The notes under the pieces: model-generated
Database searches by the model: none
Told to the model about the DNA's origin: nothing
What the model saw: only the letters and a program-made list of their open reading frames with translations
Shown here: positions 43,815-61,955 of the stretch, in pieces
Position numbering within the stretch: the first letter of the stretch is position 1
Layout of the letters: each line of letters opens with the position of its first letter
From: Macrostomum lignano
Taxonomy: Eukaryota
Assembly (NCBI GenBank): GCA_002269645.1
Contig: NIVC01000087.1
Coordinates: 1 to 64,000, forward strand
Direction of reading: 5' to 3'
Length of the DNA: 64,000 nucleotides
Position numbers and translations under genes: made by a program

Positions 43815-44155
43815 CCATAGTAACCTACGCAATCATAGTAGCCATAATAACCTACGCGTCTCTAGTAACCATAGTAACCTACGCGTCTATAGTTACCATA
43901 GTAACCTACGCGCTATAGTAACCTACGCGTCTATAGTTACCATAGTAACCTACGCGTCTATAGTAACCAACGCGTCTATAGTTACCATGGTAACCTACGC
44001 GTCTATAGTTACCATAGTAACCTACGCGTCTATAGTTACCATAGTAACCTACGCGTCTATAGTAACCTACGCGTCTATAGTTACCATAGTAACCTACGCG
44101 TCTATAGTAACCTACGCGTCTATAGTTACCATAGTAACCTACGCGTCCATAGTAA
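43815..44155. repeat. 18/27-bp minisatellite (TATAGTTACCA)TAGTAACCTACGCGTC overlapping the stop codon of nuclear receptor NR-1
   Basis: Tandem copies; the last codons VTMDA-stop of NR-1 are one repeat unit. Confidence 0.9.
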
Positions 44156-44840
44156 CCAAAGACGGCTCGCTGTTAACGGAAGATTGCAGCATCTCAGAGA
44201 AAAGCTGCGGCATTCTAATGGCCTGCCTATCAAAATAGGAGGACCAGAAGCCCAAACAGAATAATCGAATCGAGTTGATGCGGCCTGACAGAGCCATCAA
44301 TTTGCCGCGGCGGACAACATCCGGACAGATTCGGCGAAGCTCTCTAAGAAAAGTCGACTGCAACTTGTCGATTTCGTCCGGATTGTCGAAATGCTGGCCT
44401 GGCGGGCACTGCAACATAAAGATTGCTTTAAGCAGCAGGAATTCGATGCGACTGACGTTCCACTCGGTGAGCAGTCGAGCTGTCAATCGAATCTGCTGGC
44501 TGGCACGCATGGCCAGGCTGCTGTTGAACGCGCTCACCCGGCCTGGGGGCACGCAGACGTTTGCCGCGAAGTACAGCAGGCCGGTGAAGGGCACCGAGTT
44601 CATGGACAGCTCGAATGAGACCAGACCGGCCCAGTGGGCCTGCAACAGGCGGATGCGGTCGGGCATGGCGACCCGGCTAAAGCCCGGCAAGTCTTTGGCG
44701 AACTGTACCAGCCTGGCCGAGTGGGCATCCAGACAGGGCAGGACAATCACGGCCAGTTCGCGCGGCTCCACGGAGAGGAAATCTTCGCCCATTGTTGATG
44801 TTTCCATTGAGAACTGGGGCCTGTCCATGGAGCGGATGGT
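44139..44840 (-). CDS. ERR/NR3-like nuclear receptor NR-1, exon 3 (whole ligand-binding domain)
   Basis: LVQFAKDLPGFSRVAMPDRIRLLQAHW (LBD signature), SVPF, EFLLLKAI, RRGKLM, AF-2-like LFSEML; acceptor TTGCAG at 44841, phase 0. Confidence 0.88.
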   Translation of the reverse strand, partial: TIRSMDRPQFSMETSTMGEDFLSVEPRELAVIVLPCLDAHSARLVQFAKDLPGFSRVAMPDRIRLLQAHWAGLVSFELSMNSVPFTGLLYFAANVCVPPGRVSAFNSSLAMRASQQIRLTARLLTEWNVSRIEFLLLKAIFMLQCPPGQHFDNPDEIDKLQSTFLRELRRICPDVVRRGKLMALSGRINSIRLFCLGFWSSYFDRQAIRMPQLFSEMLQSSVNSEPSLVTMDA

Positions 44841-45224
44841 CTGCAACCGACGGTGAGGCGATGCAGATATTCAAGTTACTGAGAGGCATTCACAACGGTT
44901 GCTGAGCTTCTAGAGGTGTGGGGCGGCCGGGTGTTGGCAGAGCAGCGTCTGAATCTTGCGCCGCGAACCCTGGTTCGATTCCGTGCGTTACATCACAGCC
45001 ATGAGGGCCAACCCCTCAAAGACGATTAGAAAGTCAGGGGCCGATGTACACCTGTGTGAGCTGTGTATGAGTGCGTGACTGCGTACAGTATTGGTGCGCT
45101 TGTATGTTGCTCAGGAGTCTGCGGAACGGCCAGAATTTGCCTCAGCGCTGGTTGTAAAATATGAACTCAGGAACAGGTACAGAGGCTCAAGAGGGTGCGG
45201 GCAGACATACGCGGAGCTCCTTAC

Positions 45225-45548
45225 TTTACACAGTTCGCTTTCGACTTCTCCAGCAGACGGTGAGGCTGTGCGCGGCGTGTCAGCGCTGGAATTCGTTGAA
45301 GCTGCCGGACCAGAAGCTGCTTGATTCGCCGCGGCGGCGGCTCGAGCGGCGGCTCTGGCAGCGGCCCTGGCGGCTGAGGCCTCAGCCCGGTGCAGCCGGG
45401 GGTATCGCTCCGACTCGGTGCCAGGAGCTACCGTGCGCAGCATGCCCGGCTGCATCCCGGACATGAGGCAGCGGCGCCACCGGCAGGCGGGGCACTGCTT
45501 CCGGCTGGCGTTGTTCACCGGACACAGCGGCGACTGCTGTTTCGGGTC
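45225..45548 (-). CDS. Nuclear receptor NR-1, exon 2 (second half of zinc finger 2, hinge)
   Basis: [24 protein letters not shown]; acceptor after a pyrimidine tract (AATTCAG), donor GTAAGG at 45224; exact ends could shift to nearby alternative sites. Confidence 0.8.
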
Positions 45549-45592
45549 CTGAATTGGGGGACGGGCGGGGACTGTGCTGCGGCTGAGGCTGT

Positions 45593-45975
45593 GACAGACA
45601 GACAGACAGACAGACAGACAGACACAGACACACAGACAGACAGACACAGACACACAGACAGACAGACAGACAGACAGACAGACAGACAGACAGAGACAGA
45701 CACACAGGCAGACAGACAGACAGACAGACAGACAGACAGACAGACAGACACACAGACACACAGACAGACAGACAGACACACAGACAGACACACACTCTGA
45801 CAGACAGACACACAGACAGACACACAGACACACAGACAGACACACAGACAGACAGACAGACACACAGACAGACACACAGACAGACACACAGACAGACAGA
45901 CAGACAGACAGACACACAGACAGACACACAGACAGACACACAGACAGACACACAGACAGACAGACAGACAGACAG
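45593..45975. repeat. (GACA/CACA)n microsatellite inside NR-1 intron 1, which splits the DNA-binding domain
   Basis: Direct reading. Confidence 0.97.
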
Positions 45976-46000
45976 ATGCATAGCAAGTCAATCCTCTCAC

Positions 46001-59524: not shown

Positions 59525-59983
59525 GTTTCCACCTCCTTTGAAACACTCGGAAGCGGCGGCTTTATCTGCGGCGCTCTGCATAGCGGCCAAATCCGAGGAT
59601 ATTCGGGGCACCTGGCCGAGGGAGAATTTCAGCATCTCGGACATCAGCGGCGGCGGCAGGAATGTGGTCCGCTGCATCACCCGGGACCAGTATCCGACTG
59701 AGAATACCTGTATAGCGGACAGCATGCCGCTCAGAGACAGCAGCTTGCCTCGGCGAGCATTGTCCGGACAGATGGTCCGCAGCTCCCGCAGGTAGGTGGC
59801 CTGGGCGGCCTGGATCTGCTCCGGCTGGCGCCATTCGTCCAGTGGGGGCGCGGCGTCGAATAGAAACACCAATTTGAGCAGGAGGAACTCCGCCCAGGTG
59901 ACGCCTGTGCTGGTCAGCAGGCGGGCCAGACACCGCATCTGGCTGCCGCAGCGAACCGGGATCAGGCCGGCCACGCTGGAGGC
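59522..59983 (-). CDS. ERR/NR3-like nuclear receptor NR-3, exon 2 (C-terminal LBD)
   Basis: EFLLLKLVFLF...YLRELRTICPDNARRGKLL...LMSEMLKF; acceptor GTCCCGCAG at 59984, phase 0. Confidence 0.88.
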   Translation of the reverse strand, partial: ASSVAGLIPVRCGSQMRCLARLLTSTGVTWAEFLLLKLVFLFDAAPPLDEWRQPEQIQAAQATYLRELRTICPDNARRGKLLSLSGMLSAIQVFSVGYWSRVMQRTTFLPPPLMSEMLKFSLGQVPRISSDLAAMQSAADKAAASECFKGGGN

Positions 59984-60117
59984 CTGCGGGACAGATGATG
60001 ACAAAATATATCAGCTTTTTATAAGCTTGTTTGCCATTGTTTCTACTGACAGTAGGCTGTTGCAGTACGGGCTTGAAGTTTCGGCATAGAGTGCCTGCGA
60101 AGCTACAGACCACGCCT

Positions 60118-60345
60118 GTGGATCTGGGAAGGTGGCAGTGGCCCAGAAACTGAGGATCTGGGAGGCTGGCCCAGCAACTGGGGATCTGGGAGGCTGGCCC
60201 AGCAACTGGGGATCTGGGAGGCTGGCTCAGCAACTGAGGATCTGGGAGGCTGGCCCAGCAACTGACACTCTGGGAGGCTGGCCCAGCAACTGCGGATCTG
60301 GGAGGCTGGTCCAGCAACTGAGGATCTGGGGATCTGGGAGGCTGG
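60118..60345. repeat. ~28-bp minisatellite GGATCTGGGAGGCTGGCCCAGCAACTG in the NR-3 intron
   Basis: Direct tandem copies. Confidence 0.88.
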
Positions 60346-60671
60346 CGCAGTGTTAGCGATGAGTTCTTTCAGTTTCATCTTTACATGACTACAAAGGAAA
60401 GGATAATTGGAGAAGCAGGAACTGACGACTCTTTGTCGTCAAAGGAAAACTTACGGAAGCCAAAGCGAAAACACTTTGCTAGGCTAAAAATGCTTTGCTG
60501 ACTTCTGAAAATACGAGTACTTCCCACGATTAAGCACCTGGGATCACAGGGCACCAGCTGCTGTGCGAAGCGATAACAAAAGCATATCCTGTCTTTTGCC
60601 CCCCCCCCTCCCGACCAGTTCTGGCAGTTGAAACGCTTCGGTTAAAAACATCGCTTTTTTGCTTGTCCATT

Positions 60672-60856
60672 AGCCTGCCTTGCTTGCCTGCCTGCCTGCC
60701 TGCCTCCTTGCCTGCCTGCCTGCCTGCCTGCCTGTCTGCCTGTCTGCCTGCCTGCCTGCCTGCCTGCCTGCCTGCCTGCCTGCCTGCCTGCCTGTCTGCC
60801 TGCCTGCCTGCCTGCCTGCCTGCCTGCCTGCCTGCCTGCCTGCCTGCCTGCCTGTC
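60672..60856. repeat. (GCCT)n microsatellite in the NR-3 intron
   Basis: Direct reading. Confidence 0.97.
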
Positions 60857-61103
60857 AGCTCGATTGCAGGCGCGGCAAACGAGTTTTAACTACACTTCTC
60901 TAGAGTAGCGCCAGCTGAGTAGCAGCTGACTGGATTCGAATCCGAGCATGTGCCAGCAGCGTACGTATGATCCGTGCGCGTACTTAAGGGCCAGCGAAAT
61001 TCTAGCTGTTAGCTGTTGGTCAACTGTTGTTTTGGCACTCTTCAAATAAATATAAATCAATCAATCAATCAGTCAGCCTGACGATCAGTCAGCCAGTCCT
61101 CAC

Positions 61104-61955
61104 CTGATCCTCCCTCAGCGCATAGCTGGCCGAGAACTTCAGACTGCCATCGTAGGGCACAGAACTGTAGGCCACCTGCCACACAGTCAGGCTGAGCCAG
61201 TGCATCTGCAGCAATCGAACCCGGTCCTCCATAGGCAGCTGAGTGAATTCAGTCAGTCGTTTAGAAAAATCAATCAGATCAACGGCCAGTTTATTAGTGG
61301 CGGCACCCAGCTGAGCAGTGTGCTCATCCGACTGGCCTAGGGAGCCGGCGGGCGAGCTGACGGACGCGGCCGATAGCTGCTCAGCATCCGCCTGCTGATG
61401 AAGCTGATCATCTGGGGTGCACTCGTTGAGCAGCTCGGTCAGTCGGCATACCAGGGCGCTCCGGTTCGATGCCTGATGGTCGCCCTGGACGGGCCGCTGA
61501 GCCAGCAGCTGGCGCATGTAGACAGGCGGCTCGCGGCCCAACGGCAGGCTGGCGGCTGATGCTGCAGCTTCGGCTGTTTCAACGCTGTCAACCGCCGGCT
61601 GACTGCAGGAATCAGTCAGCAGAGTCGCCCCCGCTGATGCCTCAGCCGATGCAGGAGGAAGAAGAGCAGCTGTAGGCGATGAGCAGCGGACCAGAGCGGT
61701 CTGCATGCGGGCCTCCAGACAGCGGACCCACCGGCAGGCAGGGCAATGCCGCTTGCGACTGCTCTTGGGCACCGGGCAGCGGGAGCCGGAGCGCTGCACC
61801 GGGCAGAAGTAGGTCACGCAAGAGTGCACAGTGCGCTTGAAAAATGCTTTACAAGCCTCGCAGGTTACTGCGCCGTAATGATGACCAGTTGCTTTGCGGA
61901 AGCAGATACTGCAAGACTCGTCTTCTAGGAGCTGCTGCTGCTGCTGTTGGTACAT
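61104..61955 (-). CDS. Nuclear receptor NR-3, exon 1 (DBD with ERR-type P-box CEACKA, hinge, N-terminal LBD); spliced product ~437 aa
   Basis: [29 protein letters not shown]...CPACRWVRC; LIDFSKRLTEFTQLPMEDRVRLLQMHW...SVPYDGSLKFSASY; donor GTGAGG at 61103. Confidence 0.92.

Follow-up and report, generated by a model that had tools for sequence, protein, structure and literature searches.

To our knowledge, nuclear receptors of the NR3 subfamily were long thought to be missing from flatworms. Invertebrates usually carry a single gene for an estrogen-related receptor (ERR; NR3B), and the first NR3 members reported from flatworms were four receptors of Macrostomum lignano, termed MlERRs (Wu and LoVerde, PLoS One 2021; PMC8363021). 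These four proteins form a separate group within NR3 with high maximum-likelihood and Bayesian support, and they cluster with ERRs at a Bayesian posterior probability (BPP) of 0.56 (PMC8363021). Further M. lignano receptors that carry atypical P-boxes were left as 'divergent NRs' (PMC8363021). Here we describe a 64,000-nt stretch of M. lignano DNA (termed the window; positions 1 to 64,000 of contig NIVC01000087.1, assembly GCA_002269645.1, Mlig_3_7) in which three consecutive receptor genes, A, B and C, lie side by side. The three are very probably transcribed paralogues that form part of an expansion of ten receptor types, specific to M. lignano, NR3-like in character and closest to the ERRs.

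All three receptors have been described before. Their DNA-binding domains (DBDs) are identical to supplementary sequences of Wu and LoVerde (2021), such that gene C is MlERR2, gene B is MlUn6 and gene A is MlUn7 (PMC8363021). They belong to a set that comprises MlERR1-4 and MlUn1/4/5/6/7/10/11 (PMC8363021). In so far as others relay its content, the 'NR3 (ERR)' set of Cheng et al. consists of these same genes. According to the addendum of Wu and LoVerde, Cheng et al. (Front Mar Sci 2021) assigned ten of these receptors to NR3 (PMC8363021). The word 'tandem' is absent from the main text of Wu and LoVerde, and in their supplement MlERR2 and MlUn6 do share an ML2 scaffold (PMC8363021).

The original prediction placed three receptor genes on one strand at 44139-46201, 51730-57700 and 59522-61955. 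Six-frame translation and inspection of splice sites bear out this arrangement, show the three genes to be intact and assign all of them to the minus strand, so that in the direction of transcription C (MlERR2) comes first, then B (MlUn6) and last A (MlUn7). The annotation of NIVC01000087.1 likewise lists three products, one after another on the same strand, with lengths of 437, 432 (partial) and 408 amino acids, and zf-C4 and Hormone_recep domains are recorded for two of them. Because the GenBank annotation of NIVC00000000 was made solely from RNA-seq transcript assemblies (StringTie/TACO/TBONE/TransDecoder; PMC5730564), these models indicate that the genes are transcribed, and the original prediction holds on this point also. 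A tblastn search of the 64-kb window found no further nuclear-receptor copies or pseudo-exons.

Gene C (59522-61955, minus strand; MlERR2 type) comprises two exons (61955-61104 and 59983-59522) and encodes 437 amino acids that match PAA91418.1 (BOX15_Mlig030915g3) exactly. Gene B (51730-57700, minus strand; MlUn6 type) encodes 434 amino acids in four exons (57700-57288, 54056-53684, 52827-52630 and 52050-51730). This exon set reproduces PAA91417.1 (BOX15_Mlig002286g5) residue for residue, save that the GenBank protein lacks the first two residues. The intron that follows exon 2 (53684/52827) is of the GC-AG type with the donor AAG/GCAAGT, and it is confirmed by the exact agreement between the exon set and the transcript-derived protein. 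Alternative boundaries for the first intron, with a donor at 57278 and an acceptor at 54196, were rejected because the transcript-based protein fixes these positions at 57288 and 54056. The same intron holds an inverted repeat of 274 nt (arms 54332-54605 and 55226-55499, 620 nt apart and 97% complementary), with nested 115-nt repeats and a 151-bp tandem array between the arms. This inverted repeat looks like a foldback or an insertion resembling a miniature inverted-repeat transposable element.

Gene A (44139-46201, minus strand; MlUn7 type) encodes 408 amino acids in three exons (46201-46001, 45548-45225 and 44840-44139); its splice sites and Pfam matches agree with the model, and a product of 408 amino acids is annotated there. 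Intron 1 (45549-46000), most of which is a (GACA)n microsatellite at 45593-45976, interrupts the region that codes for the D-box. Intron 2 (45226-45547), with the GT..AG boundaries AAA/GTAAGG and TTGCAG/ACC, separates the hinge exon from the exon of the ligand-binding domain (LBD). With their hinges removed, the three proteins are mutually 40-47% identical, and the intron structures of their genes differ. The hinges themselves are very divergent and of low complexity.

Each product was expected to combine a double C4 DBD with a full LBD, and both Pfam and alignment confirm this. Scores against zf-C4 (PF00105) are 64-68 bits (cut-off 21) and those against Hormone_recep (PF00104) are 37-64 bits (cut-off 23.5), and all eight zinc-binding Cys residues are retained in A, B and C. 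The cores of activation function 2 (AF-2) read LFSEML, LVSEML and LMSEML across the three proteins, with the LBD of gene A ending in LFSEMLQ. Also kept in all three is the coactivator charge clamp, formed by an invariant helix-3 Lys (FAK/FSK) and the Glu of SEML. An AlphaFold2 model of the gene A LBD adopts the canonical all-helical sandwich with a terminal helix (predicted local distance difference test, pLDDT, 77). The motifs that had been predicted as common to the three proteins are shared, with slight departures in one of them: SEML is present in all three proteins, and YLRELR.ICPD..RRGKL is exact in C only, its place being taken by FLRELRRICPDVVRRGKL in A and YLRELRQLCPDSLRRSSL in B.

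When set against ERRs (human ERRalpha, ERRbeta and ERRgamma, and those of Drosophila and spiralians), the three receptors combine shared and altered features. They resemble ERRs in the S-x-P-Y motif that follows helix 5, in an alignment that continues through AF-2 (LFxEML) and in the charge clamp, and ERRs are the best LBD match by sequence profile, by profile-profile comparison and by fold. Of the three, only gene C has the predicted ERR P-box, CEACKA; gene A carries CNACKA and gene B carries CNACKT. The D-box loop is 21 residues long in A, 12 in B and 8 in C, compared with 5 in ERRs. In gene C, the second zinc finger also has one extra residue (a 10-residue loop rather than 9). The M. lignano receptors have a shorter loop between helices 9 and 10 than do ERRs, and their ten types differ from the one gene that is usual in invertebrates.

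Two further differences concern elements with defined roles. The ERR DBD is followed by a C-terminal extension whose GVRLDRVRGGRQKY motif serves monomer binding to the extended half-site TNAAGGTCA. The ERR references in our DBD alignment retain RVRGGRQKY, whereas A and B have a degenerate form of RGGRQKY (GLLRSVEAGTETKRY in B) and C shows nothing similar to it. In structures of ER, ERR and GR, the polar anchor for NR3 ligands consists of a Glu or Gln in helix 3 (DRELV / GRQVI) and an Arg in helix 5 (xRS). Every ERR, ER and NR3C reference that was aligned has E or Q together with R at these positions, whereas the anchor is replaced throughout the M. lignano family. The helix-3 residue is His in A and Leu in B and C, and the helix-5 residue is Asn in A and B and Ser in C.

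The LBD carries most of the evidence for an affinity to NR3. A profile built from five LBD sequences was searched against all PDB chains, and the best 60 matches were all NR3 receptors, with ERRbeta first at 77 bits. ERRs were the only PDB matches that aligned over the whole LBD through AF-2; NR3C alignments stop at about position 160. The gene A LBD model gave a similar result in Foldseek, where the best 50 matches were all NR3 and ERRbeta (6lit) was first with template modelling (TM) scores of 0.78/0.84; TM scores of this model to nuclear-receptor LBDs were 0.73-0.82. In profile-profile comparisons of the LBD (hhalign), ERR was the best class with a score of 195 versus at most 135 for the others. 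The equivalent DBD comparison also put ERR first, by a marginal 150 to 148. Identity of the LBDs to those of ERRs is only about 19-21% in the comparisons made.

We also searched 1.84 billion protein representatives exhaustively with HMMER, using a DBD+LBD profile without the hinge. M. lignano paralogues ranked first, followed by proteins with an ERR P-box, and the named best matches from outside Macrostomum were an ERR2-like protein of the nemertean Tubulanus, an ERRgamma-like protein of Ptychodera and ESRRA of Branchiostoma. Among the best 150 matches, the most frequent P-box was EACKA (41), followed by GSCKV (23), ESCKG (19) and EGCKA (12). Full-length proteins were less informative queries. 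Full-length gene C matched PDB entries spread over RXR, GR, NR5A, NR4A, RAR and ERR, and a word-indexed protein search with the full-length proteins returned 8 matches only, probably since the candidate list was swamped by low-complexity words (poly-A/Q/P) from the hinges. With the hinge removed, the word-indexed search returned 63 matches that comprised M. lignano proteins, named ERRs and some proteins that were uninformatively named or had no source name. No family member from outside M. lignano was found by the HMMER search of the 1.84 billion representatives or among the hinge-less word-search matches, some of which lack a source name.

Phylogenetic trees were built by neighbour-joining with Kimura distances and 200 bootstraps from 109 sequences, each with one DBD and one LBD. 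The references were drawn from the best 150 matches to the family profile, a set that over-represents similar sequences and has few members of NR1, NR4 and NR6. The ten M. lignano types form a single clade with the concatenated DBD+LBD (182 of 200 bootstraps). This clade and the absence of members outside M. lignano in the searches described above are what the lineage-specific radiation of the original prediction entails, and that claim is sustained. With the same data, the M. lignano clade joins ERR, ER and NR3C to the exclusion of NR5, RXR-like, COUP, LXR and HNF4-like receptors in 143 of 200 bootstraps (120 of 200 with the LBD). Together with the PDB profile, Foldseek, representative and hhalign searches, this grouping favours placement of the receptors in or with NR3. 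The LBD tree places the family among the ERRs at low support.

Within the M. lignano clade, A, B and C were predicted to be each other's closest relatives, and this is true in part. A pairs with B on the DBD (189 of 200), whereas gene C pairs with MlERR1 (P0005), which is encoded on another contig (199 of 200). The cluster is therefore not a simple recent triplication. A core clade nonetheless unites A, B and C with MlERR1 and MlERR4 (185 of 200), so that MlUn6 and MlUn7 nest within the MlERR clade. This nesting and the physical linkage of the three genes favour an NR3 assignment for all three, in agreement with the assignment of Cheng et al. as it is cited by Wu and LoVerde. No annotated nuclear-receptor neighbours are present within 10 kb of the MlERR1 and MlERR4 loci, and thus clustering is not general for the family.

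Several observations weigh against an origin of these receptors from the ERR/NR3 lineage. They would be expected if the receptors were a flatworm-specific group whose likeness to NR3, in the EACKA P-box of some members and in LBD scores, reflects convergence or retained ancestral characters coupled with long-branch artefacts. DBD-only analyses are non-committal, in that SF-1, ERR, NR5A2 and COUP-TF DBDs in the PDB all score 82-83 bits and in the DBD-only neighbour-joining tree the family falls close to NR5, at low support. A clade of the family with ERR that excludes ER and NR3C was recovered in only 0-10 of 200 neighbour-joining bootstraps, and the concatenated tree places the M. lignano clade as sister to all canonical NR3 receptors. 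Neighbour-joining with Kimura distances is prone to long-branch effects at such divergence, and the tree reference set is biased toward matches to the family profile. Published support for a placement with ERRs is weak (BPP 0.56), and the P-boxes of A and B led Wu and LoVerde to set them apart as 'divergent NRs' (PMC8363021). Also missing are several hallmarks of NR3 or ERR proteins, namely the Glu/Arg pair that anchors ligands, a D-box of 5 residues and the extension with RGGRQKY. Against such a separate origin, four independent LBD-based tests all put NR3 first with ERR at the top, and the clade that includes NR3 was recovered at the values given above for both the concatenated and the LBD data. 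Moreover, C-terminal motifs are common to the family and spiralian ERRs, including 'FW' in helix 11 and LVSEMLDSVLNS against LFSEMLQSSVNS. We consider an origin outside ERR/NR3 unlikely. Membership in the ERR/NR3 group, as a lineage-specific expansion of divergent receptors, is supported, mostly by the LBD, and the expansion most likely descends from a single ancestral spiralian ERR gene. Strict orthology to ERR (NR3B) was tested and is not claimed, given the 0-10 bootstraps and the published BPP.

The cluster is not unique in the assembly, and its other copies bear on two different doubts about the genes. NIVC01002152.1 carries a second, colinear copy that is 92-97% identical to the window at the nucleotide level. 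In total, Mlig_3_7 contains four assembled copies of the receptor array, which lie on contigs of 949.6, 200, 72.7 and 23 kb. Near-identical proteins are accordingly annotated for gene B (Mlig002286g1/g2/g4/g5) and for gene C (Mlig030915g1/g3 and Mlig015060g1). Since redundancy is a known property of Mlig_3_7, of which 180 Mb fall in blocks that are at least 95% identical (PMC5730564), the fourfold assembly of the cluster is consistent with the known redundancy of the DV1 assembly, and it might be asked whether the multiplicity of A, B and C is itself an assembly artefact rather than paralogy. Redundancy explains the near-identical copies on other contigs; it does not explain three genes in one window whose proteins share less than half of their residues and whose intron structures differ. 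Their divergence refutes an artefactual origin for these genes, to which we assign a negligible probability. The four assembled copies probably correspond to homeologues or to duplicated chromosomes in the DV1 line. A gene with a CSPP1_C domain lies upstream of the gene C copy on NIVC01002152.1.

The second doubt is that one or more of the three genes might be a decaying duplicate, or transcribed pseudogene. Unusual DBD features could be read in this way, namely the Asn in the P-boxes, the D-box insertion of gene A with its intron and microsatellite, and the extra finger-2 residue of gene C, as could the very divergent, low-complexity hinges. However, the reading frames are intact, all eight zinc-binding Cys residues and the AF-2 charge clamp are present, the splice sites are canonical, the gene models come from transcript-based annotation and the gene A LBD is modelled as a normal fold. 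In addition, exons of B and C are 98.5-100% identical to those of the NIVC01002152.1 copy, whereas introns and intergenic DNA are 94-97.6% identical. This greater conservation of exons provides modest evidence that the coding sequences are under constraint (purifying selection). Decay of any of these genes into a pseudogene is highly improbable.

Repeated duplication of one ancestral receptor within a single lineage has precedents in the supplementary receptors of nematodes (NHRs, from HNF4), in NR1H of amphioxus and in HR96/NR1J of M. lignano itself. The comparison with other lineage-specific receptor expansions was drawn by Wu and LoVerde (PMC8363021). Fast divergence of the P-box and LBD is shared by these groups and the receptors described here. 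The parent differs, being ERR/NR3 rather than HNF4, NR1H or NR1J, and the scale is far smaller than in nematodes, with ten types versus hundreds. As regards the array in the window, its genes very probably arose by old tandem duplications, as their mutual identity suggests, and the whole array was probably copied later by the recent genome or karyotype duplication, which would yield the four assembled copies.

The features that were retained and lost suggest how the proteins might function. As transcription factors, A, B and C would be expected to bind specific DNA sequences and to recruit coactivators by means of AF-2. Like ERRs, they are probably orphan receptors or constitutive (ligand-independent) ones, or else they respond to a non-steroidal ligand, because the Glu/Gln(H3)-Arg(H5) anchor of NR3 is replaced by H/L and N/S. 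DNA recognition or dimerization has probably shifted away from the ERR element, most strongly in A and B, because Asn takes the place of Glu in the P-boxes of these two proteins, the D-boxes span 8-21 residues rather than 5, and RGGRQKY is degenerate. A more specific proposal, which we regard as possible though rather doubtful on the basis of sequence, is that MlUn6 and MlUn7 are neofunctionalized tandem duplicates of an ERR-type gene, with a novel half-site or dimer geometry and with a different class of ligand or none. If this proposal is correct, the Asn in place of Glu in the P-box and the much longer D-box (12 residues in B and 21 in A) would confer on B and A a DNA half-site preference or dimer geometry unlike that of any characterized nuclear receptor, the loss of the Glu/Arg anchor would underlie the change in ligand, and the linkage of MlUn6 and MlUn7 to MlERR2 would settle the disagreement between the two published classifications.

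The DNA that surrounds the receptor genes is extremely rich in tandem repeats. Dozens of arrays with periods of 3-215 bp occupy most introns and intergenic DNA of the window, and they give rise to numerous spurious long open reading frames (ORFs) and to strong skews of GC/AT on a local scale. Between genes A and B (46525-51681) lie two minisatellites, one of 87 copies of a 39-bp unit (46525-49907) and the other of 28 copies of a related 36-bp unit (50672-51681). Long ORFs in these arrays (up to 1166 amino acids) were rejected as non-coding repeat artefacts. Further arrays comprise 69 copies of a 22-bp unit (55659-57110) and 46 copies of a 20-bp unit (62496-63419). At the start of the window, positions 1-6194 hold 39 copies of a 159-bp unit (92% match) that remain in frame at 53 amino acids per unit and translate to a very basic, aromatic-rich peptide repeat (RRYGRKWRVHFRKWLKRVWKKPSPKRRVLHKVTWYKRHYGRKWRWYYTRVVY). 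A 315-amino-acid segment of this repeat had no Pfam match. The array could be a gene for a repetitive secreted or structural protein, or a mere satellite.

Three other genes or coding segments were noted in the window. An intronless ORF of 476 amino acids (16185-17615, plus strand) encodes a rhodopsin-class G protein-coupled receptor (Pfam 7TM_GPCR_Srw, 111 bits; 7tm_1, 57 bits), and a (TAC)n array of 231 copies (15480-16172) is directly upstream of it. The proteasome ubiquitin receptor Rpn13/ADRM1 is encoded at 24342-27790 (minus strand), where a minisatellite of 66 copies of a 20-bp unit (25068-26393) lies between the Pru exon (27422-27790) and the UCH-binding exon (24342-25061). Minisatellites with 45-bp and 28-bp units flank an ORF at 36959-37327 (plus strand) that codes for a Spec3 domain (ectodermal ciliogenesis protein; 55 bits).

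The genes themselves, their family assignment and the expansion were already known from the two 2021 papers, and the novelty of the present findings is low. Our analysis makes a modest addition, the explicit physical linkage of the three genes and the nesting of MlUn6 and MlUn7 within the MlERR clade, and in this way it refines published work rather than making a discovery. The location of an accepted ERR-like gene, MlERR2, beside two receptors that had been left unclassified, and the union of all three in one clade, support a common origin by tandem duplication. M. lignano is the one flatworm in which ERR-like genes are known, and duplication has raised their number in this species to about ten types. 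Since this species is amenable to transgenesis and RNA interference, its receptors are open to direct tests of DNA specificity and ligand independence.

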